Assembly (NCBI RefSeq): GCF_001194135.2
Contig: NC_068989.1
Coordinates: 91,309,808-91,354,012 of the forward strand
Direction: 5' to 3'
DNA from: Octopus bimaculoides
Lineage: Eukaryota
Length of the DNA stretch: 44,205 nucleotides
In this document: positions 14,304-44,152 of the stretch, piece after piece
Layout of the letters: each line of letters starts with the position of its first letter
Position numbering within the stretch: position 1 is the first letter of the stretch
The notes under the pieces: model-generated
Told to the model about the DNA's origin: nothing
The model's input: only the letters and a program-made list of their open reading frames with translations
The model's database searches: none
Program-made: the position numbers and the translations under genes

Positions 14304-14720
14304 CTCTTTATTTCTTTACTCATTTACTACTTTCAGCTCGAGAGTTGCAGCCATGCTGGAGCACCACCGTTAGTTTCGCAACACTTTCATAACTTGAAAC
14401 CTCCTCTAATATGTGGAATTTGATGAATGATGGCGTCTGACGCTGCTGCCCTCATTTGTGTTCCCTGCCGTGAGGTAAGTTCACCCTCAACTCTTTCCAG
14501 GAGATCTCGTTTTGCTTTGAAGACACCTACATCACCCCTATATAGGTCTGTCAGACTTTTTGGGATGATACTGAATGGCAGTATTCCCTTGAAACACAAG
14601 CTGTTGCAATATGCTGTCTTGTATCTTGATATCCATGTCGGGGCCAATGACACTCAGCTCTTGTGCTTGAGTAAATTTTAATGCCGAAGTGTGGTACAAG
14701 TCACTCTCTCCGACCCTCCT
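14304..14720 (-). mobile_element. CR1/L2-group LINE, 3' end fragment
   Basis: AYCNSLCFKG...DVGVFKAKRDL...ELTSRQGTQMRAAASDAIIHQIPHIRGG aligns with the C-terminus of the RT-bearing copy at 43026-44152 and has the same 3' tail. Confidence 0.8.
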
Positions 14721-14761
14721 TACATACGTACATACATACATACATACATACATACATACAT
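14721..14761. repeat. (TACA)n tract at the 5' junction of Dong copy 1
   Basis: Read directly. Confidence 0.95.
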
Positions 14762-16603
14762 TATCGCAGAGCTATATTCCAGGATGTCATCCTCTAGGTG
14801 ATATTTATACTTTCCGTAAACCCTTTGTCATTCTTGTTAAGGAAGTCTGAGCTATATCTCATTAGTTCACAAAGAAACAGAAATAGCAAACTTACTCAGT
14901 GTTCCTTTGTGGATGACTTGAAGCTATATGCAAAGAATATGCTGGAGGTGAAAAAGAGCCTTGACATGGTTACACCATTTTCAATGTGTAAAGGGTTAGA
15001 GTTTGGTCAGGATAAATGATGCTGCATGGTTTTGAAAAGAGGGAAAACTGTAAAACAGACTAGTAGCAGCATCTCCTACAATGACTTAACTGTTTCCCCT
15101 ACATCTGACGAGGAATGTTACCGGTATTTTGTGGTGGATGTAAACTTATCTTATGATGGCAAATGTAAGAAGACACGTGTCAGTACAGAATATTACAAAC
15201 GAATAAAGAAAATATGGGCCTCGGAACTCTCTGCATTCCATAAAACAGTGCCAGTACTCATACCAACACCTGGGCTGCTTGAATGGACGCTTCATGAGAT
15301 CCAAGCTATTGATGTGAAAACCAGGAAGATACTAACAAGCACACATAATTTCCACATCAATAGTGATGTAGACCGCCTCTACTTAAAACGGCGGCAGAGG
15401 CTTTTGAATGTCGTATCATATCCCTTCGCCAACATCTTTGAACCACCAAGTGTCGAAGTGCATCCCTTGACCAAGTTTGCATACATGAGGCTGATAACAT
15501 CATAAGACTTGGAAGGCAGCTCCTTGAACAGCATTTCTTGTCTGATAACCTTAAATACATGCTCAAAGGAAGTCACACGACTCTACCGCAACGTATCAGC
15601 AGATGAAAGGATGAGCGTATATGAGCAGAAGACTATGCATGGATATGTCAGTAGAAAGCTGCGTGTTGATAGTAACATTGATCCTCAAAGCAGTCTATCA
15701 TGGACCAATAACCGGATTATTAACTTCCACTTTGAAGGGTATGCGTTTGCAATCCAGGAACAGGAAATTCCAACGAAATACCTGATGCATAAAAAGACCT
15801 GAGACGCAGGAAAAGCAGGAAAATGTGATAACCTATGCAGACTTTTGTGGAGTTAACACCCAAGATATCACCCACATCATAAGTACTTATCCAAAAATGT
15901 CATCACGGCATTATCTACCGATGAAACATGACGTAGTTGCTAGGACACTGTATAATGAGATCCGTCGGAAGGATAGTCCTCAGGCCAAAGAAATAAGAAC
16001 TTACAGTATGGTAGAAGTCGCAAGCACTCATAATAAAAAGGAGTGCTGGTGGAATGTCCCAGTGAAAACTCCAACAGAATGTAAACATAATAGACCTGAC
16101 ATTAATTTGGGACAGAGAAAAGAAAGTGTGTACGGTTGTGGAAATCAGCTGCCCCGAAGTTGTTAATGTTATGCTAAAGATTAGCACAAAAGAGAATACC
16201 TATGCTGAACTATTGAGAAATCTACAGCCACTCTATCCAGATTAGGAGTTCAGGCTTATACCTGTAATTATGTTACACACTGCCTAAATACCAGTCTTGA
16301 CAACTTATTCTTCTCAAAACCAAAAAGGAGAAACCTGATTCGAAGACTACAGCTCCAGTCCATCACTGGAACTGTAAAAATGTGTAAAACTTTCTAGAAG
16401 TTTATCATTTAAGTATATATGAGCACGTCTTGACATGCAACTATATGTATGAGAGTACATACATAAAACAAAACATCTGCATATTTAATTTACATACATA
16501 CAAAAATGCTCTCATGAAGGAGCCGTGGATCTTGGTTAGAAACCGGCTCTTTCTCTATTGGCAAGAAGTCTTGAAATAAAACTGTATAAAGACATACATA
16601 TAC
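14762..16603 (+). mobile_element. R4/Dong-clade non-LTR retrotransposon (RT + CCHC + restriction-like endonuclease), 5'-truncated and decayed
   Basis: FVDDLKLYAK (RT motif, 14906); YKRIKKIWASEL; frameshifted CRLC...HIISTYP zinc knuckle; KHDVVARTLY; WWNVPV..HNRPDI (16092); VVEISCP (16138). Several stops and frameshifts. Confidence 0.9.
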
Positions 16604-16662
16604 ACATGCATATATATATACATACATATATAAATACATACATATATGAATATATTTATGAA

Positions 16663-16715
<53 letters not shown>

Positions 16716-16718
16716 GTC

Positions 16719-16754
<36 letters not shown>

Positions 16755-17201
16755 NNNNNNNNNNNNNNNNNNNNNNNNNNNNNNNNNNNNNNNNNNNNNN
16801 NNNNNNNNNNNNNNNNNNNNNNNNNNNNNNNNNNNNNNNNNNNNNNNNNNNNNNNNNNNNNNNNNNNNNNNNNNNNNNNNNNNNNNNNNNNNNNNNNNNN
16901 NNNNNNNNNNNNNNNNNNNNNNNNNNNNNNNNNNNNNNNNNNNNNNNNNNNNNNNNNNNNNNNNNNNNNNNNNNNNNNNNNNNNNNNNNNNNNNNNNNNN
17001 NNCATCACATGTATGTATCTATGAGAATGTTATGCTTGTGTAATGGTATGTCTGTCCGTACGTGTATGCGCTTCTGTAAATTAAGAATCTATATGCTTGT
17101 TTATGTGTACCAGTATATGCGTGTGGCTTATATTTCCACGTACTTAGTGTTAGTTATAGGCAGACGCACACATTTTTAATATCTGCACATGTGCACATGT
17201 G

Positions 17202-17298
<97 letters not shown>

Positions 17299-18507
17299 GT
17301 CACACACGCATTAAAACATACGCGTACGCACACGTTCCAAACAGAAAGGAAAATATTTTTGTATATAAGACACTTACACAATTTTATTGAACTGAAGTCC
17401 TATTCTCACACCTGGAGTTTCACGTCATAGCATGGAATGTCAAATTCTGTAGTTTCTCGTTATTCAGGCTTGGCTTATGTACATGAAATCGGATTTGCAG
17501 CCTTTCCCATCTCTGTCGTTTCAGTAGCCGGTTATTTATGTTTGTCGATGATAATCGTTTTTCTTTTCTTCCCGTTTTATCAATTCGATTACTCTTCTAT
17601 TATTTCCTTTTTACTCACCTTTGCGGTTGTTTACATGTCAAATTTTTTTATGGGATTTTCCTATGCCAGTTTTTCTGAATTTGATTTTCCTTATATCGTT
17701 TCCCATTGGTCATTTCAGTTATCTTTTGCGGATGGGTTTCTCCTTCGCACAATAAACATCCTGTTTTGTTTCATTACGTCGGGCGTTGCTATACTTGTTT
17801 CACTTGTTCATTGCTTTGTCCAGCACCTATCCTGTATTTTCCTGTTGATTCTGTAATTCATAAATTGCTTTGGTAAAGTTATCATTCGATCCCATTGCTG
17901 TTTTTATATCTGAATACGCACAACGTGTTTTGATATATTTTTAGGTTAGCTTTCAGTCAACATCTCATGTAACGAAAATATGATTATTTATCTTGGGTTA
18001 ATTTTCATATTTTTGCTTTCCTGATGGACATTATTGTATCTTCACTGATATTCCCGCTTCTTTATGGCTTGTTTTTAATTCACACTAACTTTCAAAAGTG
18101 CATTCCTCCTCATATCTGCAACGTGGCATCATCTAATTTCTTCTTGTGAACACAAAATTATTTTACATAATTATACTAAATATTTTCTACGGTACACATA
18201 TGTCCTATCCCAGAAAGTAATTAACGTATGTATTTGCATTGATTGATATTGCCCATTTTATATTTGCATGTACTTTATTCTCTCTTAATTATCAAATGAG
18301 CTTCAATATAGTTTTGCTTTTTTTCTGCTTTGAATTTTCTGTTTTCATATTGTTTTCTAAATTACATTTCCATTTTCGGAAATTTTCCATTTAGGTCAAC
18401 GTTTTCTTTCACCAACGTGCTATTGCGTTTTAGATAACCTGTTGTTTATAACATGGAATATATGGTTCTATATTTAAGAGATGAGGAATTATGATTTGGT
18501 AGACATA

Positions 18508-18547
18508 AACTGAAAGGAGCCCGTCGTATATACATAGGTGTGTATGT

Positions 18548-18587
<40 letters not shown>

Positions 18588-18728
18588 GTGTCTATGTTCT
18601 TTCGATAAGATAAGTATCAGGCTTTAGAAAATACTGGGGTCGATTCATTCGACTAAAATTCTTCAAGTTGGTGCCCCAGCATGGCCGCGGCCTGATGACT
18701 GAAATAAGTAAAAGATAAAAGATAAAAG
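18508..18728 (+). mobile_element. bipartite SINE, 5'-truncated
   Basis: AACTGAAAGGAGCCCGTCGTATA, then (TG)n, then GATAAGATAAGTATCAGG...CTGGGGTCGATTCATTCGACT...GGTGCCCCAGCATGGCCGCGG and (GATAAAA)n. Confidence 0.85.
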
Positions 18729-18882
18729 TATTACATATATATATNNNNNNNNNNNNNNNNNNNNNNNNNNNNNNNNNNNNNNNNNNNNNNNNNNNNNNNN
18801 NNNNNNNNNNNNNNNNTATATATATATATATATATATACATAGATATATACATACATACATACATACATACATACACACACA

Positions 18883-19063
18883 TATTATTAAAGCTGCAAA
18901 AACAGCACAAAAAACTGTTACTCAAAGTTTTACGGAAATGTGAAACTCTGAGTAACAGTTTTTGGTGATGTTTTGCAGCTTTAATAATAAAGTATATTAC
19001 TCTACCTCCGGTATTCGAGTACTATTTTCCCCACTTTGTCTCACATTCATGTGCTTACTCTGG
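18883..19063 (+). mobile_element. Penelope-like terminal-repeat fragment with fold-back inversion and the 3' half of a hammerhead fold
   Basis: Inverted arms 18883-18933 and 18940-18989 around the loop GGAAAT; ACG-GAAA-TGT / GAAA / CTCTGAG / TA / ACAGTT. The PLE assignment is inference. Confidence 0.5.
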
Positions 19064-19654
19064 TATATGTATGTCATTGTTCAGTTTTATTTCAAGATTT
19101 CTTGCCAATAGAGAAAGAGCCTAAGGCTCCATCATTGGAATTTCAACATCAATAACAGGGTATTTTTGTTTGTTTGTTTGTATGCATGTATGTATATGTG
19201 CAGATGTGCATGTTTTGTTCTATGGATGTATTCTGATGCTTATTCTAGATATGCTCATAAATATTTAAATGATAAACTTCTGGGAAATTTTACACATTTT
19301 TACAGTTCTAGTGTTGGTTTGGATCTGTAGTCTTCGAATTAGCTTTCTCCTTTCTTATTTTGAGAAGCCTAATTACTCAAGATTGGTATTTAGACAGTGT
19401 GTTACATATCTCAGAGCCCCAATAAACCTGAACTTGTAAGTTGGATAGTGTAACTGCAGATTTCTCAATTGTTCAGCGTTTCATTTTTACTGATCTTCAG
19501 CTTTATTTTAACATCCGCTGAGTAGGTAATTTCCACAACAGTTTCTCTTCGCTATCCCAAATCATTATAATCAGGTCTGTTGTGCTTACATCTTATTGAG
19601 CTCTTCACAGAGACATTCCACCAGTACTCCTTTTTATTATGAGTAGCTATGGCC
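19064..19654 (-). mobile_element. R4/Dong-clade retrotransposon, second copy (RLE domain + 3' UTR)
   Basis: EYWWNVSVKSSIRCKHNRPD..IWD...VVEI. The 3' UTR GGCTCTTTCTCTATTGGCAAGAAATCTTGAAATAAAACTG is nearly identical to 16543-16584. Confidence 0.9.
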
Positions 19655-19740
19655 ATGTATGTATGTATGTATGTATGTATGTATGTAGGTAGGTAGGTAA
19701 GTAGGTATGTATGTATGTATGTATGTATGTATGTATGTAT
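19655..19740. repeat. (TATG)n/(AGGT)n tract at the 5' junction of Dong copy 2
   Basis: Read directly. Confidence 0.95.
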
Positions 19741-20355
19741 TCATTACAGTTTTAATGTGGTTTCTCGATTTAGCAGCTTCTAGACAATCCGTGTGTCACT
19801 GCATGAAAAGATGTATTATGTGCGTTGCTGAGAAATATTAATTGACACGTAAATTTCTTTTGCAAAAATTGGGAAAGAAGAAATTTTAAAAGGCTGTGAT
19901 GCGCTTAAATTTCTGTAGCATTATTTATCTGCATGACCTGAAGGGCAAGGTAGGAAAATTCGCAAATGTCAACAACGACTAAAATTTAACTGTAACGTAC
20001 ACATTTATTTTATATTTCCTTTCCGCAATTTCAACGATGTTTATAACAGTCTACTTCAAAAATGAATTGAAAGAGAAAACCTAGCCGTTGCCTATTAAGC
20101 CTCAATCACGTAATTTAAAAAACCCCTCTTCATGTGTTAACGATATTTTGAACGCTGCGCGTTATCTTTGTAAGTATCTATATGCACAAATCTCTCACTC
20201 CCTCTCTCTCTCTCTCTATTTCCCTCTGTGTCTCTGTATGTGTGTGTGTGTTCATGCAGTAGGGTGTGCGTGTGTATAATTGTGCATGTAAGCGTTGTTA
20301 TTTATGTACATGTACACACACTCACTCACACACACACAGACATACATATATGTAC

Positions 20356-20405
<50 letters not shown>

Positions 20406-20442
20406 TTATTTATTTATTATCTATCTATCTATATATATATAT

Positions 20443-20780
20443 AATTGCAGCGTGGAAGCTCTTTATAAGCCATTGAAAATAACACACAAAAACCGTTAGA
20501 TTCACTTCAATATTTAAATTTACTTTGCCAAAATATTTTCGTCGCTTTGAGACCGCGACCTGTTTATTGACAAAATTCTGTGCTGCACGGAATTTTGTCA
20601 TTGAACAGGTCGCGGTCTCAAAGCGACGAAAATATTTTGACAAATTAAATTTAAATGTTGAAGTGAATCTAACGGTTTTTGTGTTTCTTAAATGGCTTAT
20701 AAAAACCTTCAACGCTGCAGTTGTTTTCGTTCCAGCGTACGATCTCAGAACAGGTCACTTGCTATGCAAGTACATATCCC
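20443..20780 (+). mobile_element. Penelope-like terminal repeat with 280-bp fold-back palindrome
   Basis: Arms 20443-20583 and 20585-20722 are roughly 90% complementary with a 1-nt apex. The right arm continues to a (CT)n/(TA)n tract and contains a hammerhead-like fold. Confidence 0.6.
20594..20644 (+). ncRNA. hammerhead-like ribozyme fold (type I, minimal, non-canonical N3/C8 core)
   Basis: Stem I TTTGTCA/TGACAAA; core TTGAACA-G; stem II GTCGC/GCGAC; GAAA; palindromic stem III ATAT; UU at the cleavage site. Confidence 0.55.
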
Positions 20781-21002
20781 TCTCTCTCTCTTTATATATA
20801 TATGCATACGTACATTTATATATAAACAAGCAGAGGGCCCCGGCTTCACTTGGATTATAAACTCATAGCCTTTACACAGTACTCTTTGCCTGTAGCATAA
20901 GATTAGCGTATTTCTCAGAAAGTAACACTTATTTTAATACTCAAGAACACATGTTCTGAACTGAAATAAATGTGGTTATACATACACGTGCGCGTCTAGG
21001 TA

Positions 21003-21072
21003 GTCAATACCGGAAGTAAGCATTGAAAAACCTGTTGCTACGTCAATACCGGAAGTGGACATTGAAAAACCT
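21003..21072 (+). repeat. 39-bp-period direct duplication containing two ACCGGAAGT (ETS-like) motifs
   Basis: GTCAATACCGGAAGT...CATTGAAAAACCT starts at 21003 and again at 21042. Confidence 0.85.
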
Positions 21073-21164
21073 TTTTAAAGGAGTGAATCATTTATACATA
21101 AAACAATATTATCTATTTTATATAGTTATAATAAAAAAAATAAATAAATGAAGAGCCTGTTATG

Positions 21165-21236
21165 TATCCGAGGTCAAATTATTATCCGAGGTCAAATTAT
21201 TATCCGAGGTCAAATTATTATCCGAGGTCAAATTAT
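21165..21236 (+). repeat. 18-bp tandem repeat x4 (TATCCGAGGTCAAATTAT)
   Basis: Four perfect units read directly. Confidence 0.95.
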
Positions 21237-21379
21237 TAATGTATCCAAGTATAGGACCGTTTCGCGCAGCCGTTACTGCGTGAAAAGCGAATACTCTCTC
21301 TCTCTCTCTCTCTCAAACACACACATGTCTATTTTATATAATAAATATGTATTTATACATAGATAAATANNNNNNNNNN

Positions 21380-21418
<39 letters not shown>

Positions 21419-22471
21419 ACACACACACACATATATATACATACATACACACGGATGCTCATATTGGCACACACGCTTGCAGACACACACACATACACGC
21501 ACCCACGCATGCACGTATATATGTATGTATATATATTTGTTTTCGAAGTAAAATAAGCAGAACGCAATACACGAATTAAGGTTCCTAAGTTTTCGTTATA
21601 GCAACTTAATAAGTGAGGGCAGAAGATTTCAATTTAGGGGAAGAAAACAAATGGATTAAATGTGATTTAGCACGAAGATATAAGAAATTGAGTAATTTCT
21701 CTCGTATCCGCAGATAATAAAACATTATATAATATATACATCAAACACACTCACATACACGTGTATATATATGCATGTATAGCTATCCATGTATAGATAT
21801 ACAGATAGATATGCTCGCCTAAATAAATGCATACATGCATACATACACCGCTATTGCAAGCGTATGTCTGTGTAGGTGTACGTCTCTTCATAAAAATCAT
21901 CTAATCGGCTGTTAAGCGGAATCGATTTGCAACGAACATTCACAATGGATAAAATTTCCCCAATATTTGATTCGCCTTTTAGAAACTAGTTCTCGGTTGG
22001 TTTAAACAGAATCGATTAAAAATATCTAAAATCCATAAGTCTTGGGTGGTTCAGGTAGGTTGCCTGCAACGTTTTTTCTTCGGGGTTAACATTCCTCCCT
22101 CAGTTTTTCTTACTTTCATTCAGCGTCTCCTGACATTTGAATTATAGAAAAATGACTCTTGAATCAATTATTTGAAAATCCATTTTGGAAATAAACAGTT
22201 TGGTAAAAAACTAGTAAATATTTGAAATTTTCACACAGACTTGAAAATAAGGTTATAAATATGCGCTTTTTTGAAGTTCTTGTCTGAATTCTTTTCATGG
22301 AAAAATTTATTGACGTAATGAAATATTATTTATTATATAATAAAATACATTATTTTCATATATATTGACTGTTGTAATTTTTGGATTATAGAATCTTTCT
22401 TTTATTAAATTCGTTCCTCCTTTTATTTGTACAGGTTTTGAGAGTAATATTCATATGCTACTCCCGCTACA

Positions 22472-22488
22472 ACTGCTGCTGCTGCTGT

Positions 22489-22535
<47 letters not shown>

Positions 22536-22549
22536 TTACTACTACTACT
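22472..22549. repeat. (CTG)n(CTA)n microsatellite
   Basis: Read directly. Confidence 0.95.
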
Positions 22550-22636
22550 AACTTTTGCTTTGGTTTTCTCTTTCTCTCTTTTCCTCTTTCGCTCTCATAG
22601 CGTCCACATTCATCCACATATCGTAGAGTATGTTGG

Positions 22637-22830
22637 TTTTAAATTTTGGCAAAAGGCCAGCAAGTGCAAAAGAGAGGATAAATTGATGATATCGACCCAA
22701 GTCTTCAACTGGTATTTTTTTCTTTTTCTTTTGACCCCGAAAGACTGAAAAGCAAATCGACCTCGGCGGAAATTGAACTCAAAATGTAAATACGAATGAA
22801 ATGCAGTCACAGCTTGAAATGAAATGCGCT
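22637..22830 (-). mobile_element. SINE family A
   Basis: TTTTGGCAAAAGGCCAGCAA (tail), TCGACCTCGGCGGAAATTGAACTC (B box, reverse complement). Confidence 0.75.
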
Positions 22831-24745: not shown

Positions 24746-25129
24746 GTAAATAAGCTAAAACAATAAGTTACAACGAGAATGAGATTCTTGTGTGATTCGG
24801 AAAGAATAATAAGAAAAGAAAAGATTTTAGTATTCAATAGAAAATACTTCTTTGTGTGATAATAATATTTCGCCAAATAAATTTACAAATATAATTACAG
24901 ATTCGGTATGTATGTTTATATATATAAAAACATTAAATACAGTATTTCAAATTCTACCTTAAGCAATTAAAGTTAACCAACAGAAGTGTGATATTGACAC
25001 ACATACATACAACGAAATGGAATCTCGTGTTTTTTTGTCATGTAATTATTATTTCTAAGTAAGAGATCATAACAAGAATTTTAGCATATGAGAATTTGAG
25101 AAGCCTCTCAAGAAATCACAGTTGTTTAT

Positions 25130-25328
25130 TCTTTTATTCTTTGATTTGTTTTAGTCATTTGACTGCGGCCATGCTGGAGTACCGCATTTAGTTGAGCAAA
25201 CTAACTGCAGGACGTTTGTAAGCCTAGTACTTATTCTATCGGTCTCTTTTACCGAAACGCTAGGTTACGAAAACGTAAACTCACCAGTATCGGTTGTCAA
25301 ACGATGCTGGGGAACAAACACAGGCACA

Positions 25329-25367
<39 letters not shown>

Positions 25368-25391
25368 ACACACACATAGACAGACAGACAG

Positions 25392-25430
<39 letters not shown>

Positions 25431-25583
25431 GACGACGGCCTTCTTTCAGTTTCCGTCTACCAAATCAACTCACAAGGCTTTGGTCGGCCCGAGGCTATAG
25501 TAGAAGACACTTGCTCAAGGTGTGACGTAGTGAAACTGAACCCGGAACGATGTAGTTGGTAAGCAAGCTACTTACCACTTAGC
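25130..25583 (-). mobile_element. bipartite microsatellite-SINE, complete
   Basis: Tail GACTGCGGCCATGCTGGAGTACCGC, right arm, (CA)/(CAGA)/(TA) microsatellite 25318-25430, left arm and head. Confidence 0.92.
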
Positions 25584-26039
25584 CTAGTTTCTCTACTATT
25601 CTGACTGATATGAAGATATTAACAGGCATCGAACTTATTGGTCGTGTATGTAGCGAATATCGAGTTATTTTACGATTTAATATATTAATGAAATTTATTA
25701 TTGATTTTCAAGTCATACTATTTTCCGTACGCGAAATTACTCATTATAAATCTGTTTACCAATCTCAACCACAACTAGAGTAGCATGTTTATGTCCCAGT
25801 TTGCAGTCACAAGTGAATTCCTCAACTAGCGTTTATATTTTTTGTTGGACTGCTTGAAATGGTCTCCAAATTTCCTTAAAACACATCCTAGCGATTCTAA
25901 ATGGAAAGGCTGGTTACTTGATGCAATTCGAGATAAAATGTCAGACAGAAAAGCAGGATGGTCAACTTTAGGCAATCGGACTAATTGATTTAGTGCTCAC
26001 CTAAGACAACATTTCAATAAATTAGACTTTTTTTTACAA

Positions 26040-26787: not shown

Positions 26788-26940
26788 GTCTTTTCATCTT
26801 TTATCTTTTACTTGTTCCAATCATTAAACAGCGGCCATGCTAGGGCACAGATTTGAAGAATTTTAGATGAACGAATCGACCCCAGACTTTAATTCATAAA
26901 TAGCTATCAAGCGGTGGTGGGGCAGAAACACAGGCGTTAA
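26788..26940 (-). mobile_element. bipartite SINE right arm, partial
   Basis: GCGGCCATGCTAGGGCAC...GAATCGACCCCAG...TCAAGCGGTGGTGGGG. Confidence 0.75.
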
Positions 26941-28039: not shown

Positions 28040-28438
28040 GCACGACGCGAGTGCGTGTTGAGACGTTAGCTTGCCAATCACATGGTTCCGCATTTATCCT
28101 ACTCCCTGACACGTTCGGCAAGTGTTTCTACTCTAGCGTTTGGCTGACCAAAAGCATTGTGAATGGATTTGGTAGGCAGAAACTATAAGAAGCACGTCTT
28201 GAAAACACACGCACGCACGCACGAACACACACACACGCGCACACATATCATTGCTCTTATGCTGGTTTGATCACATCACCGTTGCGTAGCGGTTCAGAAA
28301 ATGAAAGCGATAAGTACAAGGCTTAAAATAAAAAAATAAAAAAGTAGTCAGATCGATTCATTTGCTTAACAATTCTTCAAGACAGTGCCCCAGCAGGGCC
28401 GCAGGCTCATGACTGAAACAAGTAAAAAGATAAAAGAT
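28040..28438 (+). mobile_element. bipartite microsatellite-SINE, complete, diverged
   Basis: CAATCACATGGTTCC..GGCAAGTGTTTCTAC..(CACG)n/(CA)n..GATAAGTACAAGG..GTGCCCCAGCAGGGCCGCAG..GAAACAAGTAAAAAGA. Confidence 0.8.
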
Positions 28439-28483
28439 GGAGGATAAAAGCTGCGAAAAGAAATTAGAAATAAAATTTTAAAA

Positions 28484-29490
28484 TATCAGGTCATAAAGAA
28501 TGAAATGTCCGATTTTGAACTGAAAGTTTATTTTACTTTATTTCAACAAAAAGCAATGCAGTTAATCAAAGTATGCACCTAAATTCTGCACCTAAACACA
28601 ATTTTGCCATTGTATGCACCTAAACACAATTTTGCCATTTTATTACTAGCTTATTTATGCCGGCAGCGAAGGATTCTGGAGAGCAAGAGTTGATGAGATC
28701 ACGAAAAGCTGTTTTTGCATTTTCTTTGCAAAAGGTTGTTTAATGCCTGGAAAACGTGATAGTGAGTGAGTTGGTGCAAGGTCTGGTGAATACGGTGGAT
28801 GACAGAGTACTTCCAAGTTCAGTTCCTGTAACTTGAGTAGCGTTCTTTGTGCAACATGTGGCCGAGCATTGTCTTGCAAGAGAAATGGCCTGTCTCTATT
28901 GACCAATCTCAGTTGTTTAATTGCAAATTCACTCATCATTTCATCCTCCTGGTTGATGTATACATCCGCTGTAATTGACTTACCAGGTCCCATGAAACTG
29001 TACTGAATGACACCAGAGCCGGACCACCGAGTAGACACCATTAGCTCTCTTTGGTGAATATTCTTTTTTGGATTTGTGTTTTGGCACTTCGTCTCTATCC
29101 AACCACCGTTCAGAACGCTAGCGATTGTTGAAAAGAATCCATTTTTCATTACACGAAACAATACGTTGCAAAAATGTTTCACTTTTATGCCGTGACAGCA
29201 CAGAACAGCAAGTTTCAAGACGACGCGTCATTTGATGCTCGTTCAGCTCGTGTGGTACCCACTTGTCCAGCTTCTGTACCTTGCTGACGTGTTTCAGATG
29301 GCCCAATATAGTTGGAACCGAGACATTATACATTCCTGATATCTCACGCGTAGTTTGAGATGTATCCGCTATAGGTTCCAGCTCAGCATTATCGATCTTG
29401 GTCCGACATCTACCACGGAGCTGATGACAGAATATCCCATACTCAGGGATATCCCAGAAACAGCTGTAAAACTGAATTTTTTCCATTAAA
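28484..29490 (-). mobile_element. mariner (D,D34D-type) DNA transposon, inactive
   Basis: WVPHEL, SCNEKW (first catalytic D mutated to N), LLQDNARPH, HPPYSPDLAP (third D lost), frameshifted. TA-TCAGG TIR-like end at 28484; 25-bp tandem duplication near 28587-28639. Confidence 0.95.
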
Positions 29491-33280: not shown

Positions 33281-33612
33281 CATCAGATCATACTGGAGCA
33301 CCGCCTTGAAGAAATTTTGACGAACGAATCGACCTCAGCGATTATTTTCTAAAGCATGGTGCTTATTCTATCGTCCGATTTTGCCGAACCACCGATGTTA
33401 CGACGACGTAAACATACAAAAACACCGGTCGTCAAGCGTTGGCAGGCGACAAATATATATACAAAAATACACTCCATATACATATATACATACACGCCAG
33501 TCATTCTGTTTCTGTTTACCAATTCTACTCATAAGGCTTCGGTCAGCCCGATGCTGTGGGAAGAGGCACTTGCCTGCGATGTCACGCAATGGGACTGAAT
33601 CGGGAACCACGC
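33281..33612 (-). mobile_element. bipartite SINE, diverged, short internal microsatellite
   Basis: CATACTGGAGCACCGCC...CTTATTCTATCG...GTCAAGCG..(TA/CA)..TTTCTGTTTACCAA...GCACTTGCC...GGGAACCAC. Confidence 0.8.
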
Positions 33613-34573: not shown

Positions 34574-34934
34574 ATACATATATATTAATACATATTGATT
34601 CAGTTTTCAATTTCAATACATATTTGAAACATCAGTTACGAATTTATAATTTGCCGTGTACAAATTTGTAAAAGAAAGACAAGCTAAGATCTAAAATATT
34701 TAATTTCTTACGGCCTATTAGCAATTTCAAATTATCTGGGTTGACTGGCATCCGTGAGAAAACTTATTAAAGCCATGTAAATGCCATAACAAATGATTCT
34801 CATTAACATTTTAATATATTTATGAGATATTTTTTATAAGGAATTTTACATTGTTTTCTTTCATTTATGTAAATGAAAAACGATTGCGGTGAACTCTTGA
34901 TGAAGTTTAAACAATTTCGGTTTCATTTTTTTTC

Positions 34935-35160
34935 CATGTTTGAGACATAAGAGTATGACCATGCTGTAGCACCACTTTGAAGGTTTTATGCGAATAAATA
35001 CACACAAGTACTTAGTGTTTTTTTCCAAAACTGCTGCTTAGTCTGTTTGTATCTTTCGCTGAACTGCTAGGTTGCGGGGGACACGAACCAACACTGGCTA
35101 TCAATCGGTGGGTGGGGCGGCGTTGGGGGACAAAGAGCGACACACTGGGAGACACACAAA
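34935..35160 (-). mobile_element. bipartite SINE right arm followed by (CA)n
   Basis: GACCATGCTGTAGCACCAC...GCTGAACTGCTAGGTTGCGGGGAC...GGGGGACAAA. Confidence 0.7.
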
Positions 35161-35161
35161 T

Positions 35162-35732: not shown

Positions 35733-35780
35733 ACAACAACTGCTACTATAATAAATAATAATAATAACAATAATAATAAA
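35664..35780. repeat. compound trinucleotide microsatellite (CAG)n(CAA)n(TAA)n
   Basis: Read directly. Confidence 0.95.
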
Positions 35781-36205
35781 CAGCAAGTCACAAACTGTGC
35801 CAACTTTCTCTTCGAAGGCACATTGTAAACCAGGAATACAAGAATGGTAGCTATCACACACACAGAGAATTAGATAGAACGCTTATAATTCAGGAACTTT
35901 CGCCAGCAATTTCTGTGAAAATTTGCTAGTCTGAGACTTAAAGTATGTCGGCTCCATTACTAGTGATAATTATATTGTAGAAAATGTAATTATGTTTGCT
36001 AAAGGAATTGCAATGACATTGATTAACCAATGCGTTAATTAGCAGTTGTTGATATAGAAGATTCGTCTTCTCTGCCAAATAACCCCTTGCGTATTATCTA
36101 AACACCACTAAATTTATAAATACCGAGAAATCAGTGGGAAAACTACTGTAGTAGAAGATGCAGTAACGGCTGCAGCAACTACAATAGCAACAAGAACAGC
36201 TTAAA

Positions 36206-36246
<41 letters not shown>

Positions 36247-36404
36247 AATATGGTGCTTTATCTGCTGCTTCCAAATCGCTCTATGAGTAAGGCAAGGTGT
36301 TTGCGATAATACAAATGCATGCGACGGCGGGACGCTTGAAAACGACGGTTAGTATCAAATGATCACGTGCACCGTGTGTTTGCTAACTGCGTTTGGTGTC
36401 TCAG

Positions 36405-36472
36405 CAGACAGGAGCAAAGATGAACGCCGTCTTAGTCCTAGCTCAGAGGAATATGAAGTAGTTAATACATGA
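36405..36472 (+). CDS. candidate terminal coding exon (ADRSKDERRLSPSSEEYEVVNT*)
   Basis: GCTAAC branch point, ...GTCTCAG acceptor, open 21-codon frame to TGA. No homologue recognised. Confidence 0.25.
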
Positions 36473-36949
36473 AAAGAAGAGAACGTTATCCCTGATTCGG
36501 CTGCAAAGATTTCCAACTGAATGGACTGTTGAAAACTGAAATGAAATATCTTGCTAAAAGAAAAAAAAAAAAAAATGCAATCTGTTTCCCGTTTCAGAAA
36601 CTGAAACCGCGACATCATAATCACGAGACCAACTTACAATTCACGTACCTTATCACGCACACATATACAAATTCAAACCCCAAAGAATTCCTCTCAACAC
36701 ATGGCTATGATGCTCCCCCTCTACTTCTGCTCATGATCAGAGATGCACATATCGTCAGCCACCAAGGGACATGCTCAACTAGTTAAGGTCAAACAACTGA
36801 CCAGCAAATCTGTGGTATTGAGCAGAATATTTGCTGTAGCCCAGCTCGTATACCAAGAAAAAACAATGTGCATGATAACACTTCCAATCAGTTAAGATCA
36901 GAAGCCATGAGAGCCACTGCCTGATACATTATTATTATTATATATATCA

Positions 36950-36961
36950 TCATCATCATCG

Positions 36962-37026
<65 letters not shown>
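36950..37026. repeat. (TCA)n(TTA)n microsatellite
   Basis: Read directly. Confidence 0.95.
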
Positions 37027-37028
<2 letters not shown>

Positions 37029-37304
37029 ATGTGACATAGCTTGCTGGTGTCATCAATGTACCTACTGCTCACTTCCAGTGTGCTAGGCTGGAACGTTCTT
37101 TTCAAGCTTGTGGGGCTTTGCCGAGACTCTCTACACTTCCAAGTAATGCCGTATCCTTGACTTGTTTTATTTTCATTTTCCTAGCAGTTTACTCCAAAAA
37201 CTTCTCAATTTTTGCGCTCCCTGAACTTAAAGCACCAATGATTATCCATAAGATATACAGATTTGTCATTTAGCGGAGCATTTTTGATTTTTGATTTCTC
37301 TCTT

Positions 37305-37579
37305 TACAACTTTATATTTCATACTTGTTTCAGACATTAGACTGCGGCCATGCTGGGGCAACACCTTCATTAATTTTTTAGATGAAGGAATCGACCCCAG
37401 TACTTATTTAAGCCGAGTATTTATTTCAATTTACGGGGACGTAAACACACCAACACTGGTGGTCAAGCGTTCTAGGGAGATAAACACAGACACAAAGTCA
37501 GGCAGACACACTCACTCACATGCGCACACAAACACGTATACATATACATATTTGTGTGTGTGTGTGTGTGCGTATATGC

Positions 37580-37613
<34 letters not shown>

Positions 37614-37722
37614 GGCAGGTTTCTTTCGGTTCCTGTCTACCAAATCCAGACACAATGCTTTGGTCAACCTGAGGTGCCACGCAGTAGTACTGATCCGGGA
37701 ACCATGTCGTTGGGAAGCAACC
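37305..37722 (-). mobile_element. bipartite microsatellite-SINE, complete
   Basis: GACTGCGGCCATGCTGGGGCAAC...GGGGACGTAAACACACC...microsatellite 37505-37612...GGAACCATGTCGTTGGGAAGC. Confidence 0.88.
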
Positions 37723-37811
37723 ATATATATATATGAATATATATATATATATATATGTATANNNNNNNNNNTATATATATATATATATACACATGTATAT
37801 ATATATACATA

Positions 37812-37854
<43 letters not shown>

Positions 37855-37858
<4 letters not shown>

Positions 37859-37997
37859 CGGTCTTCTTTCAGTTTCCGTCTACAAAATCAACTCAAAAGG
37901 CTATAGTAGAAGAAAGAAGCCCGAGGTGCCACGCAGTGGGATTGAGCTCTGAACCATGTGGTTGGGAAGCGAGCTTCTTACCACACAATCACACCTG
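37855..37997 (-). mobile_element. bipartite SINE left arm, in tandem with the previous copy
   Basis: CGACGGTCTTCTTTCAGTTTCCGTCTAC...GGTGCCACGCAGTGGG...CTTACCACACAATCACACCTGCG. Confidence 0.85.
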
Positions 37998-38464
37998 CGT
38001 TTGTCTTATATCCATTAGCATTTGGTTTGTTAATTCTTAAAGTTTCACACAAGTTTACTTAACTGCACTTAATTCGGAAAACGTTCGAATGAAGCTGTTG
38101 CCTGCAACGCATTACTTAGTGAGGCGCCTATTTATGGCGATGCATTGTGTAGTGGAATGTGTGACGTAAGAGAAGTGTCGTTAGTTCCAGCTGGATGGCT
38201 ATGTTGTAAGGGAAATCACCCAGCCCAGAACTGTTGTCGTCATTAAGTGCCAGATGCTCAGCGTCGGTGTGTCATGTTGAGATCAGGAGAGGAAGTCGTT
38301 GGTCGAATTGGGAGATAAATTACTCTTGAAATGTAAATTACATCACGTAACTTCCTATATGTGGCCTTTCAGTGTCAGCCACCTCCAACACAAACACCAA
38401 CACAGACAAACACCAACACACAACTAACACAAAAATGCATGGGCGCATACAGATGCGAGAGGCC

Positions 38465-38620
38465 TCTGCATAGCTTCTGTCTAAAAATGTTACCCACAAA
38501 GAATTCGCTAGTTAGGGGTTGCTTTAGAAGATAATGGCACAGGGTTTTATCAAAATTATTTCATTCACTGAGTTTTATCGCGCCGGTGAAAGATGTTGTG
38601 GCTTGGTGATTTTGGTTGGT
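38465..38620 (-). mobile_element. bipartite SINE left arm, highly degraded
   Basis: Loose match: TTCTGTCTAAAAATGTTACCCACAAAG...TAGAAGATAATGGCACAGGG. Confidence 0.4.
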
Positions 38621-38821
38621 GATTTTGTTTGGCTATTCGAGCTATAACTTTTAGCTCTTATTTCTAGCAATTGTAGGTACAATTTTGCACCCTTATTTAT
38701 GCATTCTAACTTCTTGGTTTTTAATTAATCTAGCTACCTGTATTATAACGTATTTAATATATCATAATATTCATTTATCGTTACAATATCTCATTGCATG
38801 TTTATAAACACACGAATATAT

Positions 38822-39100
38822 TTTTATCTTTTATTATTTTAATTGGTTCGCTCATTAGACTGTGGCCATGCTAGAGCACAGCCATGGAGAGTTTTTAGTC
38901 GAATGAATCAACCCCAGCACTTTTATTTTTTACCAAGCCTGGTACTTATCTTGTCGGTCTCTTTTGCTGACCTGCTAAGTTATGGCAACGTAAGCACATC
39001 AACACCGGTTGTCGAGTGGTGGTGGCCGACAAGAATTCACACAGACAGACAGAGAGAGACACAGAAAGACAGAGAGACAGAGAGACATAGAGACAGATAG

Positions 39101-39146
<46 letters not shown>

Positions 39147-39325
39147 GCGCATATGCGACGAGTTTCTCTCTGTTTCCGTCTTCCACATCTACGGGCAAGG
39201 CTTTCATCAGCCTGGGGTTATAGTAAGGGAGTGTCACGAAGTGGGACTGAAGTCCCACGAAATGAGACTGAACACACCCGGGAACCATATGGTAGGGAAG
39301 CAAACTTCTTACCACAGCCACGTCC
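38822..39325 (-). mobile_element. bipartite microsatellite-SINE, complete
   Basis: GACTGTGGCCATGCTAGAGCAC...internal (CAGA)/(GA)/(CA)/(CG) 39040-39152...CTTACCACAGCCACG. Confidence 0.88.
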
Positions 39326-39331
39326 ATACGT

Positions 39332-39363
<32 letters not shown>

Positions 39364-40985
39364 GTATGTATACACATGTAAATATGTAGGCATGTATGAA
39401 TGTATTTATATATAAATAAGTGTGTGTGTTTGTGTGTGTGTGTGTGTGTGTGTAAATGAGGTACCGACGCAAAAAGACACTCTGCAACTGCTTACAGCTT
39501 TTCACTATGTCGAATTAAATTATGCAACCGTTCATATAAACACTAACATTTTAACTGTTATCATCGCCAATCTATGGTATATATATACATATATATATAT
39601 ATATAGATAGATATAGATATATACATATATANNNNNNNNNNNNNNNNNNNNNNNNNNNNNNNNNNNNNNNNNNNNNNNNNNNNNNNNNNNNNNNNNNNNN
39701 NNNNNNNNNNNNNNNNNNNNNNNNNNNNNNNNNNNNNNNNNNNNNNNNNNNNNNNNNNNNNNNNNNNNNNNNNNNNNNNNNNNNNNNNNNNNNNNNNNNN
39801 NNNNNNNNNNNNNNNNNNNNNNNNNNNNNNNNNNNNNNNNNNNNNNNNNNNNNNNNNNNNNNNNNNNNNNNNNNNNNNNNNNNNNNNNNNNNNNNNNNNN
39901 NNNNNNNNNNNNNNNNNNNNNNNCACACATAGATATGTTTATATACATGCCCACCTTGATACGGCGTTTAGTGAAATATGATTATGACATTTAAAATTTC
40001 TATCGCTAGCTGTCATATATATTACAGTAATATTATATTCAAACATCTTTCATAAAAGCTACTGTTTATATCGATCTAAATGTTTGGTGTGAATGAAGGT
40101 GTAAAACTTAGTTTAGAAATTTCTATAAAAACACGCATAAATTTATGTATAGGAAGAAAATATAAATATAATAGACAAGAGGAGGAAGCCAAACTCTGTT
40201 TTGTGTCGTTAAAATAGTTTTCACTTCTATATTTCATCTTAATATATGCAAATATAGAAACATTCTAAAGAAACTGCTGTACACTATCAAGAAAAATAAT
40301 TATTTTTATGACACTGTCTATATGCGATATAGTTTACTATTGCACCAAGTAGATTTAGACAAAAATATATATACGTATATACATTTATATATAAGTTGAC
40401 AAAGTTTAATAAATATTCACACACACAGAGAAAGACATACAAACACACACGTATACTCACACATACGCATATATATACGCTCACACCACCATATATATAA
40501 ACTTAAACGTATATGTGTTTGTGTGTTTGAGTGTATGTATATGGAATTTATTTAGATAAATTATATGTGTATATATAATTTTTCTAAAGTTATATACATC
40601 TCACAAATGCATTTCTTTTAAGTTACTTTCAACTGGTTATTAGACTATGGAATTTTGTGGTCTGAAGCGAAACGGACTCAAGTTTTTACCCATCGATTGA
40701 AATAAATTGTGATTATTTACCTTAAGAAATCTCTGACGCTTCTTCCAACGCGGTGCTGTTCCACATATTCTGGATTATAACGGAATGCTCGCACGGTACC
40801 CACCTGTATACTTCATCCCGAACTATTCATTATATATACATATATACAAAGTATGGGGGTTTAGTTCGCAGGTGGTCTAAACGATTAGATACGATAGGTA
40901 AGTGTTGTAATGGATTTCTAGGGCTCCAAAGTTATAGCCGAGAAGACAATTATGGAGCTATTGCAAATTTCCTGTGCAGAGGATA

Positions 40986-41100
40986 TATAACTGTTAAAGA
41001 GGACAACAAAGTTTAAGGTAAAGCGAACGATAATACTAATGGATATAACTTGAAATATTTGCGTTGCCTTAACACTCCTTGTCCTCTTTAACAAATTATA
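40986..41100. mobile_element. short inverted-repeat (MITE-like) element
   Basis: TGTTAAAGAGGACAA...TTAAGG pairs with CCTTAA...TTGTCCTCTTTAACA; TA-rich flanks. Confidence 0.45.
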
Positions 41101-41966
41101 TATATACATATATATATATATATATANNNNNNNNNNNNNNNNNNNNNNNNNNNNNNNNNNNNNNNNNNNNNNNNNNNNNNNNNNNNNNNNNNNNNNNNNN
41201 NNNNNNNNNNNNNNNNNNNNNNNNNNNNNNNNNNNNNNNNNNNNNNNNNNNNNNNNNNNNNNNNNNNNNNNNNNNNNNNNNNNNNNNNNNNNNNNNNNNN
41301 NNNNNNNNNNNNNNNNNNNNNNNNNNNNNNNNNNNNNNNNNNNNNNNNNNNNNNNNNNNNNNNNNNNNNNNNNNNNNNNNNNNNNNNNNNNNNNNNNNNN
41401 NNNNNNNNNNNNNNNNNNNNNNNNNNNNNNNNNNNNNNNNNNNNNNNNNNNNNNNNNNNNNNNNNNNNNNNNNNNNNNNNNNNNNNNNNNNNNNNNNNNN
41501 NNNNNNNNNNNNNNNNNNNNNNNNNNNNNNNNNNNNNNNNNNNNNNNNNNNNNNNNNNNNNNNNNNNNNNNNNNNNNNNNNNNNNNNNNNNNNNNNNNNN
41601 NNNNNNNNNNNNNNNNNNNNNNNNNNNNNNNNNNNNNNNNNNNNNNNNNNNNNNNNNNNNNNNNNNNNNNNNNNNNNNNNNNNNNNNNNNNNNNNNNNNN
41701 NNNNNNNNNNNNNNNNNNNNNNNNNNNNNNNNNNNNNNNNNNNNNNNNNNNNNNNNNNNNNNNNNNNNNNNNNNNNNNNNNNNNNNNNNNNNNNNNNNNN
41801 NNNNNNNNNNNNNNNNNNNNNNNNNNNNNNNNNNNNNNNNNNNNNNNNNNNNNNNNNNNNNNNNNNNNNNNNNNNNNNNNNNNNNNNNNNNNNNNNNNNN
41901 NNNNNNNNNNNNNNNNNNNNNNNNNNNNNNNNNNNNNNNNNNNNNNNNNNNNNNNNNNNNNNNATA

Positions 41967-42060
41967 TACCGTAAATCCTAGAGTATAATCCGCACTTTTT
42001 TCCCAAAATTTAAAGGTAAAAATTTCTAGTGCGCACTATATACGAGGTTAAAAAGGAAAA
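41967..42060 (+). mobile_element. possible Tc2/pogo-like DNA transposon end
   Basis: TA-CCGTAAATCCTAGAGTATAATCCGCAC with an inverted subterminal copy GCGCACTATATACGAGG. Resemblance to Tc2-type TIRs is recalled, not searched. Confidence 0.35.
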
Positions 42061-43025
42061 ACATTTTCTAAGCAGAATTTTCTAAGTGATAAATATGTAG
42101 AGGGAATTTACTTAATATTTATGTTTCACTGACGTTATTACTTGATATTGCTCCAATCTGGCCAGCCCCAAGAAAAAACTAAGCTAAGACCATTAGATTC
42201 CTTGAAAGAAAGCAGCGAATGTATACAAAAACAAGCATGAAAAAAACGAACAATGTTACACAAATACAGTAAGAATAATAAGACATAACAACAGATGTCT
42301 AGCGACTAAGGACGAATTATATATATATGGTGTATTGGGAATGTATAATTCAACAGACAATGGTCTGTCTTAGAGAAAAGGAAAAGGAGAGGTGGTTAAT
42401 TGTTGCTGCAAGGTAAAACCTATACCTTAATGGTGAAAGGGTGACCGAGATCAATAGTTATCTGTACGATAAATTACAGTTTCTTCTACTAGATTTATAT
42501 TTGGTTTATCAATTTTCAATCAAATACACGTATAGATACATGATGCGATTACGTGCATATATGCGGATCACAAGCAGACACAAACTCATACACATACACA
42601 GAGAGAGAAATATACAGGACCATACATACGTACCCACAAGTATATATACATGTGCGTGTGTGTGTGTTTGGAAGCATGTATATTTGTAGCCCAGGTACAC
42701 CAGGAAATACTTCCGCTTGCCGCTTCAATTATATATGTGTATGCATGTATGTATGTATGTATGTATGTATGTATATATGTATATATGTATATATGTATAT
42801 ATGTATGTATGTATGCATGTGTGTATGTATTTACATACATATATATATATATATATATAATTATACATATACATATATATATATGTGCCTTTGTATGTAT
42901 ATATATGCATGTATATGTATATATAGATATATATGTATATATATATTTTACATATATGCATATATATACATATATATATATGTATATAACTATATACGTA
43001 TGTTTGTATATGTATATATATATAT

Positions 43026-44152
43026 TGGTAGTTACAACTCAGAGCTCTGGCCATGCTGGAGCACTGCCATTTTGCTACACTGTTATTATTAGATCCTCCT
43101 CCAATATGTATCACTTGGTGTAGAATTGAGTTTTATATAGCTGCCCTCATTTGCACCTCTTACCATGAGGTAGGTTCGCCAGAGACTCCCGAGAGGAAGA
43201 GGTGCAGTCTTGATTTAAAAACGCCTGCATCTACTTTGTGCTGGTTCCTCAGGCTCCTTGGGAGATATTAATATTAAAAAGCTATGGGCCACTTAAACCT
43301 AGGCTGTTGCAGTAACTGATAGCGCGATGGCATTGCTGAGATCTTTGGCACTCTGCAGTGTCGACCCGTTCTGGCATTCGTGTAGCTTTCAATGCATACC
43401 TCTCCCGCCTTCGCTCCAGGTAGTAGAGTCTTAACTGTTTCAGCCTTTCCCAGTAGCTGAGCAGTTGCAAAGACACGATCTTCTTTGTGAAGCATCGCTG
43501 GATTGCTTCAAGGTCCGCTGTTAATTTTACATTATTGGGTGACCATAGCTGGGAGCAGTAACCCAGGCGGCTGAGGACGAATGTCCTCCAGAGGATCATC
43601 ATGGTTTTCTTATCTCTGGTTCTGAATGTTCTCAGGATCCATCCAGCCAGTCGTCTGCACTTTGTCGCCATCCTGGTAATGTGCACTTGGAAAGAGGTAT
43701 CATCACTCATGTCGATACCCAGGTCTCTCACTGATTTAGGCTCTGGGATTGTAATTCCCAGTTGACCAGTGTACTCTGTAAGTTTCATATTCAGTTTTGG
43801 ATACTGGTAGCGCAGGGCTTGGACATTTAAACTGCATATTATTATCCTCAACCCATCTGTAAATTAAGTCCAACTCCTGCTGCAGATGTGCAACATCACT
43901 AAGGTTCTGTATTTTCTGCGAAACGTCCGTATCATCTGCGTAGCTAGCAAGGATGGCTACCGGCAGTTGGGGACATGTCTGAGAAGGCCACTATGAAAAG
44001 CAGTGATCCCAAAACCGTGCCTTGTGGAATACCGCTCACTATTTGTGTTTTATTGAGGTGGCTCCATTAGCCACTACTGCCTGACTTCTATCTTTCAGAA
44101 AGTCATGTAACCACTCTCCAAGCTTTCAAGCTATGCCGAGATCACGCAGTTA
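43026..44152 (-). mobile_element. CR1/L2-group LINE: RT domain to 3' tail, 5'-truncated and decayed
   Basis: FLKDRSQAVVANG, SGIPQGTVLG, YADDT (43931-43942), VRDLGI, WILRTF, YCSQLWSP, YWERLKQLRLYYLERRRERY. 3' tail GGCAGTGCTCCAGCATGGCC. TA-rich flanks. Confidence 0.93.

Follow-up and report, generated by a model that had tools for sequence, protein, structure and literature searches.

A CR1-like LINE and the dominant SINE of an Octopus bimaculoides locus share a structured 3′ tail

Introduction

Short interspersed nuclear elements (SINEs) that carry the tail of a CR1 long interspersed nuclear element (LINE) include the tortoise Pol III/SINE and the CR1-partnered DeuSINEs and V-SINEs, and the eel elements UnaL2 (a LINE of the L2 clade) and UnaSINE1 were reportedly proven by experiment, by Kajikawa and Okada in 2002, to be a stringent pair. 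For octopuses, Ohshima and Okada are said to have described the tRNA-derived SINEs OK, OR1 and OR2 in 1994. Here we analyse a stretch of 44,205 nucleotides (nt) from Octopus bimaculoides (contig NC_068989.1, positions 91,309,808 to 91,354,012 of the forward strand; hereafter the window), in which two fragments of a CR1-like LINE and numerous copies of a bipartite SINE were found to end in the same type of 3′ tail.

The model in which a stringent LINE and a SINE share a tail has been reviewed (PMC3747384), and the CR1 3′ end has been described as a hairpin plus an octamer microsatellite that forms a putative recognition site for the reverse transcriptase (RT) (PMC4316615, PMC8665684). SINEs dominate the repeats of octopuses (PMC8967140, PMC13282606). 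The octopus genome papers class the main SINEs as tRNA-Core and tRNA-Deu, leave most Octopus vulgaris SINE families unclassified and give no partner LINE, and the recent octopus repeat papers stress RTE, Dong-R4 and CR1 only as LINE classes. There is no octopus entry in the 2013 table of SINE/LINE pairs. A first-pass annotation of the window, which proposed the pairing, knew of no description of it, and in the searchable literature (Repbase and Dfam entries being outside its scope) we likewise found no octopus description of a LINE/SINE pairing and no paper that contains the tail strings.

Results

LINE fragments of the window and their 3′ ends

Two fragments of the LINE family are present in the window, both 5′-truncated and dead.

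14304-14690, minus strand: LINE copy 1 (w1), a 5′-truncated CR1-like LINE fragment with the last ~88 codons of open reading frame (ORF) 2 and the 3′ untranslated region (UTR)
14304-14368, minus strand: tail of LINE copy 1 (covariance-model match 14307-14368, 67.7 bits, E 1.7e-15)
43027-44152, minus strand: LINE copy 2 (w2), the C-terminal half of the RT and the C-terminal domain (Pfam RVT_1)
43027-43068, minus strand: tail of LINE copy 2 (covariance-model match 43009-43068, 56.4 bits)

The ORF of copy 1 (14387-14653) ends in TGA, and the tail begins 18 nt downstream. Read on the minus strand, the tail consists of GGTGGTGCTCCAGCATGGCT at 14368-14349, then GCAACTCTCGAGCTGAAAGTA, and then GTAAATGA GTAAAGAA ATAAAGAG down to 14304. 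The first of these segments is predicted to form hairpin 1 (14349-14368) and is followed by hairpin 2 (14334-14347, CAACU[CUCG]AGCUG) and AAAG, after which the three repeats of about 8 nt fill 14304-14327. The C terminus encoded by copy 1 aligns with the family proteins P0001, P0002, P0114 and the ORF2 of the Argonauta hians element L004. The 5′ limit at about 14690 is approximate, and a (TACA)n run adjoins it.

Copy 2 corresponds to residues 647-1014 of the 1021-amino-acid (aa) ORF2 of Argonauta hians (BLASTP, 43% identity, E 3e-93) and is degenerate, with frameshifts, stops and a deletion of about 31 aa. Its minus strand reads GGCAGTGCTCCAGCATGGCC at 43068-43049. Hairpin 1 (43049-43068) is intact, whereas hairpin 2 (43034-43047) has decayed and a TA-rich microsatellite stands in place of the terminal repeats. 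It had been annotated that both LINE copies end shortly after the ORF stop; because copy 2 is frameshifted and has no stop at the homologous place, this is strictly so for copy 1 only.

No assembly gap (run of N) lies inside or across any LINE fragment or tail. The gaps nearest to copy 1 are at 12688-13043 and 16755-17002, and that nearest to copy 2 is at 41127-41963. The range 14304-44152 simply marks how far apart the two LINE copies lie, and therefore the argument needs no continuity across gaps.

The LINE and SINE tails are homologous from hairpin 1 onward

Alignments of SINE tails with LINE tails gave scores of 35-67, compared to shuffle maxima of 19-27; of the 51-57 positions aligned, 43-51 were identical. 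In contrast, the 45-60 nt upstream of hairpin 1 showed no similarity between SINE and LINE (p 0.2-1.0). Therefore, the shared module is about 55-60 nt long and starts exactly at hairpin 1. A resemblance further upstream (TTGC…ACTAA), noticed by eye, was not significant and was rejected. The alignment of LINE and SINE 3′ ends that had been proposed as a check on the pairing thus yielded homology over the whole module, and, together with the survey of further LINE copies described below, it bears out the proposal that a CR1-like LINE and the dominant SINE of the window share a structured 3′ tail that appears to be derived from the LINE.

The terminal repeat unit, GTAAAAGA or ATAAAAGA, is common to copy 1, to three further LINE copies (L001, L020 and L024) and to both SINE subfamilies, A and B. 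The LINE tails also have features of their own lineages, namely hairpin 2 (CAGCC/GGCUG versus CAGUC/GACUG in the SINE), loop lengths and repeat units.

A 15-mer core of the tail, GTGCTCCAGCATGGC, has 11 matches in the window at no more than 2 mismatches, compared to 0.04 expected from 100 shuffles; 2 are at the 3′ ends of the LINE fragments and the remainder at those of SINEs. With the covariance model for the tail, 12 full tails were found (2 LINE and 10 SINE), and one further, truncated SINE tail is at 33287-33301.

The tail belongs to the LINE family

The first-pass annotation had reasoned that if most LINE copies lacked the tail, SINE tails would simply have inserted next to the two copies of the window. 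Further LINE copies were collected by protein searches and contig look-ups and were counted only if the 3′ end was complete, which gave seven: L021 from Octopus vulgaris (chromosome OX597824.1), L002 and L004 from Argonauta hians, and L001, L020, L022 and L024 from four metagenome or assembly contigs. It was found that all 9 of the 3′-complete copies (these seven and the two of the window), from several octopod sources, have the tail, in the same orientation as the LINE. The tail starts 0-31 nt past the ORF2 stop, a distance that is not measurable in the decayed copies w2 and L021; in L021 the reading frame has decayed, and the annotated ORF runs through the tail. A contig designated L023 was left out of the count: its LINE ORF diverges before its end into GC-rich sequence, and it was treated as chimeric or truncated.

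The Argonauta element L004 is full-length. Its ORF1 (291 aa, with weak Myb/SANT and CCCH matches) overlaps an uninterrupted ORF2 of 1021 aa, with matches to Exo_endo_phos_2 (an AP-endonuclease domain, E 1e-13) and RVT_1 (E 1e-31), and the tail lies 13 nt past the ORF2 stop. The 3′ UTR is very short in this family.

When LINE copies are compared with one another, identity is 46-64% over the 330 nt just before the tail, and in hairpin 1 it reaches 16-20 of 20 positions (80-100%). Conservation of the tail thus clearly exceeds that of the coding DNA, and selection appears to act on it. More distant relatives, L003, L005 and L006 (44-54% amino-acid identity), are without the octopod tail sequence, and so the module is confined to the family's octopod lineage.

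By eye, L005 (12332-12380) and L006 (4439-4490), both at 44-50% amino-acid identity, have tandem repeats of 9-10 nt, GGTAAGGTA and ACTTCAAGTA, soon after the stop, with a short hairpin before the repeats in L006. A hairpin/repeat 3′ architecture may thus be general for this CR1-like group.

In a metagenome contig scan with P0001, a single distant relative was found (29% identity) and no copy from a cephalopod, and a viral contig scan for GGTGCYCCAGCATGGCC gave 12 single matches, which were taken as chance. The contigs L001 and L023 (ENA ERZ23491053, ERZ23491054) and L020 (ERZ23499302) are octopod LINE fragments in environmental metagenome assemblies, and therefore cephalopod DNA is present in those samples. 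In addition, P0216, a 94-aa entry labelled Escherichia coli ‘hypothetical protein, partial’ (NCBI, UniRef), is 68% identical to the C terminus of the octopod LINE and probably stems from contamination of a bacterial assembly by animal DNA.

Predicted fold of the tail

The module consists of hairpin 1, GGY.GUGC[NCCA]GCAU.GCC, hairpin 2, CAGYC[3-8 nt loop]GRCUG, the sequence AAAC, and 2-3 tandem repeats of 7-8 nt (for example, GTAAAAGA). The outer pairs of hairpin 1 (GGY/GCC) are separated from the inner stem by a 1x1 G.G internal loop. The minimum-energy fold was (((.((((....)))).))).(((((....))))) in the five intact LINE tails that were folded and in both SINE consensuses, with z scores of -2 to -4.3, and RNAalifold independently predicted the same two-hairpin fold. 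For copy 1, hairpin 1 is kept and the hairpin 2 region folds otherwise (z -0.2), and for copy 2 the fold is unrelated (z 0.33).

Over nine LINE tails and the two SINE consensuses, 97.7% of the pair cells were paired, compared to 22-44% when the partners were slid. The covariation in the stem that had been suggested as a check was looked for and found as compensatory, double-sided changes at three pairs: 3:18 (CG/UG/UA), 25:38 and 26:37 (CG/UA). Hairpin 2 varies in loop length (3-8 nt) while its stem is kept; it is conserved as structure, and hairpin 1 mainly in sequence. For hairpin 2 the structural model thus has good support; for hairpin 1 it is plausible.

The first-pass annotation had folded the tail as a single hairpin, GCGG-TGC(tcca)GCA-tgg-CCGC. 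Its inner stem was retained, but its outer register has no double-sided changes and is broken by L001 and Arg2, and the second hairpin (CAGYC...GRCUG) was absent from it. The GCGG…CCGC register was dropped for the two-hairpin model, with its high level of pairing and three covarying pairs. Rfam gave no match at gathering score across the window, and at 14250-14450 only chance-level matches (E above 2).

Anatomy of the SINE

The SINE copies of the window, with their tails, are as follows.

3813-3874, plus strand: SINE tail, subfamily A; the SINE body runs from 3671, with head and microsatellite lost in the gap 3317-3608
7836-7897, minus strand: SINE tail, subfamily B, of a full SINE at ~7838-8271
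11347-11408, plus strand: SINE tail of an internally deleted SINE at ~11236-11408, followed by (TA)n and the gap 11420-11688
14125-14293, plus strand: SINE head in the orientation opposite to LINE copy 1; its 3′ end, …GTCCGTCATATACATG, adjoins the 3′ end of LINE copy 1
18667-18728, plus strand: SINE tail, subfamily B, of a 5′-truncated SINE at ~18492-18728, followed by (TA)n and the gap 18745-18816
25126-25597, minus strand: best full-length SINE copy, with head 25431-25597, (TA)n(TG)n 25326-25430, and body plus tail 25126-25325 (tail 25125-25186)
26791-26852, minus strand: SINE tail of a 5′-truncated copy
28381-28441, plus strand: SINE tail of a full SINE at ~28069-28441
33287-33607, minus strand: SINE with a tail cut within hairpin 1 (core 33287-33301)
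34915-34976, minus strand: decayed SINE tail (covariance model, 23 bits)
37303-37365, minus strand: SINE tail; the SINE reaches ~37674-37984, with the gap 37762-37771 inside a TA run
38822-38883, minus strand: SINE tail of a full SINE at ~38827-39315

The bipartite SINE of the first-pass annotation is real: in at least 7 copies of the window, the order is head, internal (TA)n/(TG)n microsatellite, body of about 140 nt, and tail. The copy at ~11236-11408, in which the body directly follows the first ~26 nt of the head, argues that the whole is a single unit. The end string that had been quoted for the SINE is composite: GGCGGTGCTCCAGCATGGCGGCAGTCAAATGCCTGAAACAAATCAAAGAACAAAAGA is found in the copy at 3813 and GGTGGTGCTCTAGAATAGCCGCAGTCAAATGACTGAAACAAGTAAAAGAGTAAAAGA in that at 11347. 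Two subfamilies were distinguished: A, with the hairpin 1 loop TCCA, the hairpin 2 loop AAAU and 8-nt repeats, and B, with the loops CCCA and UAAU, respectively, and 7-nt repeats. The same SINE is also present in the Octopus vulgaris locus L021.

By eye only, the SINE copies show a 5′ end that resembles a tRNA and, as a B-box-like motif, GGTTCCGGGTTCAGTCCC; ARAGORN found no tRNA, and neither did Rfam. Members of the CORE-SINE superfamily have a conserved CORE domain of ~60 bp behind the tRNA head, and a stretch of the SINE (…CACCTTGGGCAAGTGTCTTCTACTATAGCC…) may be CORE-like.

Just upstream of the tail, both subfamilies have, by eye, an inverted repeat GTCGA-5 nt-TCGAC (…GGGGTCGATTYRYTCGACTAAA…), as at 25190-25215 and 7900-7930, both on the minus strand. 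There is no counterpart of it in the LINE copies, and it may be a third hairpin that is specific to the SINE.

Microsatellites and assembly gaps at the element ends

At 14125-14303, about 10 nt separate the end of the SINE head on the plus strand from the 3′ terminus of LINE copy 1, which is on the minus strand. The LINE fragment occupies the place of the internal microsatellite of this SINE, which indicates a nested insertion into a SINE-borne microsatellite.

In 5 of the 9 LINE copies, and in 2-3 of 11 SINE copies, a TA-rich (or CA) microsatellite follows directly on the terminal repeats of 7-8 nt. These junctions, which could stem from a preference for such targets or from slippage in the …GTA/ATA units, are as follows.

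Window, 11409-11419, 18729-18744 and 43000-43030: 3′ junctions into microsatellites
L001, 1770-1810: 3′ junction into microsatellite
L021, 10385-10400: 3′ junction into microsatellite
L024, 595-615: 3′ junction into microsatellite
L004, 4955-4965: 3′ junction into microsatellite

The gaps 3317-3608, 11420-11688, 18745-18816 and 37762-37771 lie inside or adjoin SINE TA/TG microsatellites, and the true lengths of those SINEs are hidden. The SINE microsatellites appear to be a main cause of gaps in this scaffold.

Other elements in the window

Three further remnants of mobile elements were seen in the window.

14798-16166, plus strand: a second, unrelated non-LTR element, with an RT-like …FVDDLKLY… stretch and a C-terminal …CWWNVPVKT…CKHNRPDI… domain
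28655-29486, minus strand: mariner/Tc1-type transposase remnant (Pfam Transposase_1, E 2e-10)
11700-11969, minus strand: mariner/Tc1-type transposase remnant, by eye only

The CWWNVPVKT/CKHNRPDI domain is 49% identical to an ORF beside an Argonauta LINE (L002, 7-540). Its NRPDI motif is reminiscent of the restriction-like endonuclease found in R2, R4 and Dong elements. A 113-aa piece of this second non-LTR element had no match in Pfam.

Discussion

Proposed trans-mobilisation of the SINE by the LINE

A model may be proposed, after the stringent-type pair UnaL2/UnaSINE1 and as has also been proposed for CR1, in which the ORF2 protein of the CR1-like LINE would recognise the two-hairpin module, the terminal repeats would be used to start target-primed reverse transcription, and SINE RNA with the same module would be copied in trans. 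A corollary of this model is that every new SINE insertion would also seed a microsatellite. We give a probability of roughly 0.85 to this explanation as a whole, from the module shared by LINE and SINE to the copying of the SINE in trans.

Several points weigh against this reading. Recognition of the tail by the RT and mobilisation of the SINE in trans are what we infer from the sequences and from analogy with the described pairs. The LINE copies of the window are dead, and no intact O. bimaculoides copy was recovered. The SINE hairpin 2 (CAGUC...GACUG) and the 7-nt repeat of subfamily B are matched exactly in none of the sampled LINE lineages, and so the actual master partner lies outside the sample. 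The covariation rests on few independent events, as the 9 LINE copies and 2 consensuses are related by descent, and hairpin 1 is nearly invariant, which puts its pairing mostly beyond the reach of covariation. Lastly, RTE elements are the LINEs stressed as expanded or active in octopus (PMC9115989, PMC8967140).

Alternatively, the SINE could have acquired a CR1-like tail that is now a relic, its expansion being driven by another LINE (RTE or Dong/R4) or by relaxed recognition. RTE-BovB has been reported as expanded in octopuses and RTE-2_OV as a transcribed full-length element (PMC8967140, PMC9115989), and the internal microsatellite of the SINE could be the vestige of an older, microsatellite-ended tail. 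However, both SINE consensuses keep both hairpins perfectly paired together with the terminal repeats, so that the master copies kept the module through the expansions, and there is no other LINE-like sequence at the extreme 3′ end of the SINE. We consider a relic tail improbable.

The direction of transfer might also have been the reverse, the module having arisen in the SINE or elsewhere and been captured by the LINE through template switching or recombination. Tail exchange between retroposons is known, and similarity alone gives no direction. Yet the module is found in LINE lineages, including those of Argonauta, whose coding DNA is only 46-64% identical, and therefore it is of great age within the LINE. 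No SINE tail was found in 14.5 kb of Argonauta sequence, a small sample, compared to 10-11 in the 44 kb here. Furthermore, a 3′ hairpin with an octamer is a general CR1 trait, and the distant L005 and L006 have tandem units of 9-10 nt a short way past the stop, to which L006 adds a hairpin noticed by eye. Capture by the LINE is thus very improbable, more so than a relic tail.

The least probable explanation is coincidence, in which tail-only, 5′-truncated SINE fragments landed just downstream of both LINE fragments and the tail belongs to the SINE: although SINE tails are very common (10-11 in 44 kb) and nested insertions do occur, as by the SINE head that adjoins LINE copy 1, this is effectively refuted by the presence of the tail at the same place and in LINE orientation in 9 of 9 LINE copies from several species and samples, by the hairpin 2, loop lengths and repeat units that the LINE tails have of their own, by the absence of SINE body sequence upstream of the LINE tails, where the boundary of homology is sharp, and by the position of the SINE head beside LINE copy 1 on the opposite strand.

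If the LINE does mobilise the SINE, a wider scenario may be drawn, which we regard as speculative and rather unlikely. In it, the octopus SINE explosion would have been driven by this CR1-like LINE and not by RTE, the …GTA/ATA repeats would preferentially prime on TA-rich microsatellites, and the SINE microsatellites would serve as landing pads for new insertions of LINEs and SINEs in a self-reinforcing process, which would explain microsatellite-riddled, gap-prone genomes. The hints behind it are the LINE and SINE ends that run into TA-rich repeats and the location of LINE copy 1 inside a SINE microsatellite.

Significance

Among the repeats of Octopus genomes, SINEs form the largest class, at about a tenth of the genome, and their expansion is regarded as octopus-specific. 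A named candidate partner and recognition module provide a handle for dating and explaining this expansion and make a retrotransposition assay designable, and the tail helps to classify the hundreds of SINE families that are listed as ‘unclassified’.

Comparison with known systems

In principle, the octopus pair is unsurprising, a textbook case that would behave as CR1 or L2 stringent pairs do. The domain order and the 3′ architecture agree with the annotation of the LINE as ‘CR1/L2-type’, and it is by these, not by RT phylogeny, that the family may be called CR1-like; CR1 and L2 are not separated by them.

Like UnaL2 and UnaSINE1, the octopus LINE and its putatively tRNA-type SINE (CORE-type in eel) share a 3′ stem-loop followed by short tandem repeats, with the stem kept as structure. 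Unlike the octopus tail, that of UnaL2 has one stem-loop and a 5-nt repeat, TGTAA, and the octopus pair is known from sequence, whereas the eel pair is reportedly proven by experiment. The octopus tail matches no Rfam family, including curated LINE 3′ elements such as UnaL2. With OK, OR1 and OR2, compared by description and not by sequence, the SINE of the window has in common the host group and a head that appears tRNA-like.

The likeness to amniote CR1 extends over the whole element: an ORF1, one ORF2 that encodes both AP-endonuclease and RT, and a 3′ UTR that is very short, and in the octopus LINE without poly(A), in which a hairpin region is followed at once by 2-3 tandem repeats of about 8 nt. 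As for the CR1-tailed SINEs, a SINE of the same genome, putatively of tRNA type, copies the 3′ region of the LINE. In contrast to amniote CR1, the octopus tail is unrelated in sequence to the ATTCTRTG octamer and its hairpin, there are two adjacent hairpins where a single one is usually drawn, and the octopod repeat unit varies by lineage (GTAAAAGA, ATAAAAG, CATTAAAA, ATACAAGA). The hairpin-plus-octamer 3′ architecture of amniote CR1 is thereby extended to a mollusc lineage.

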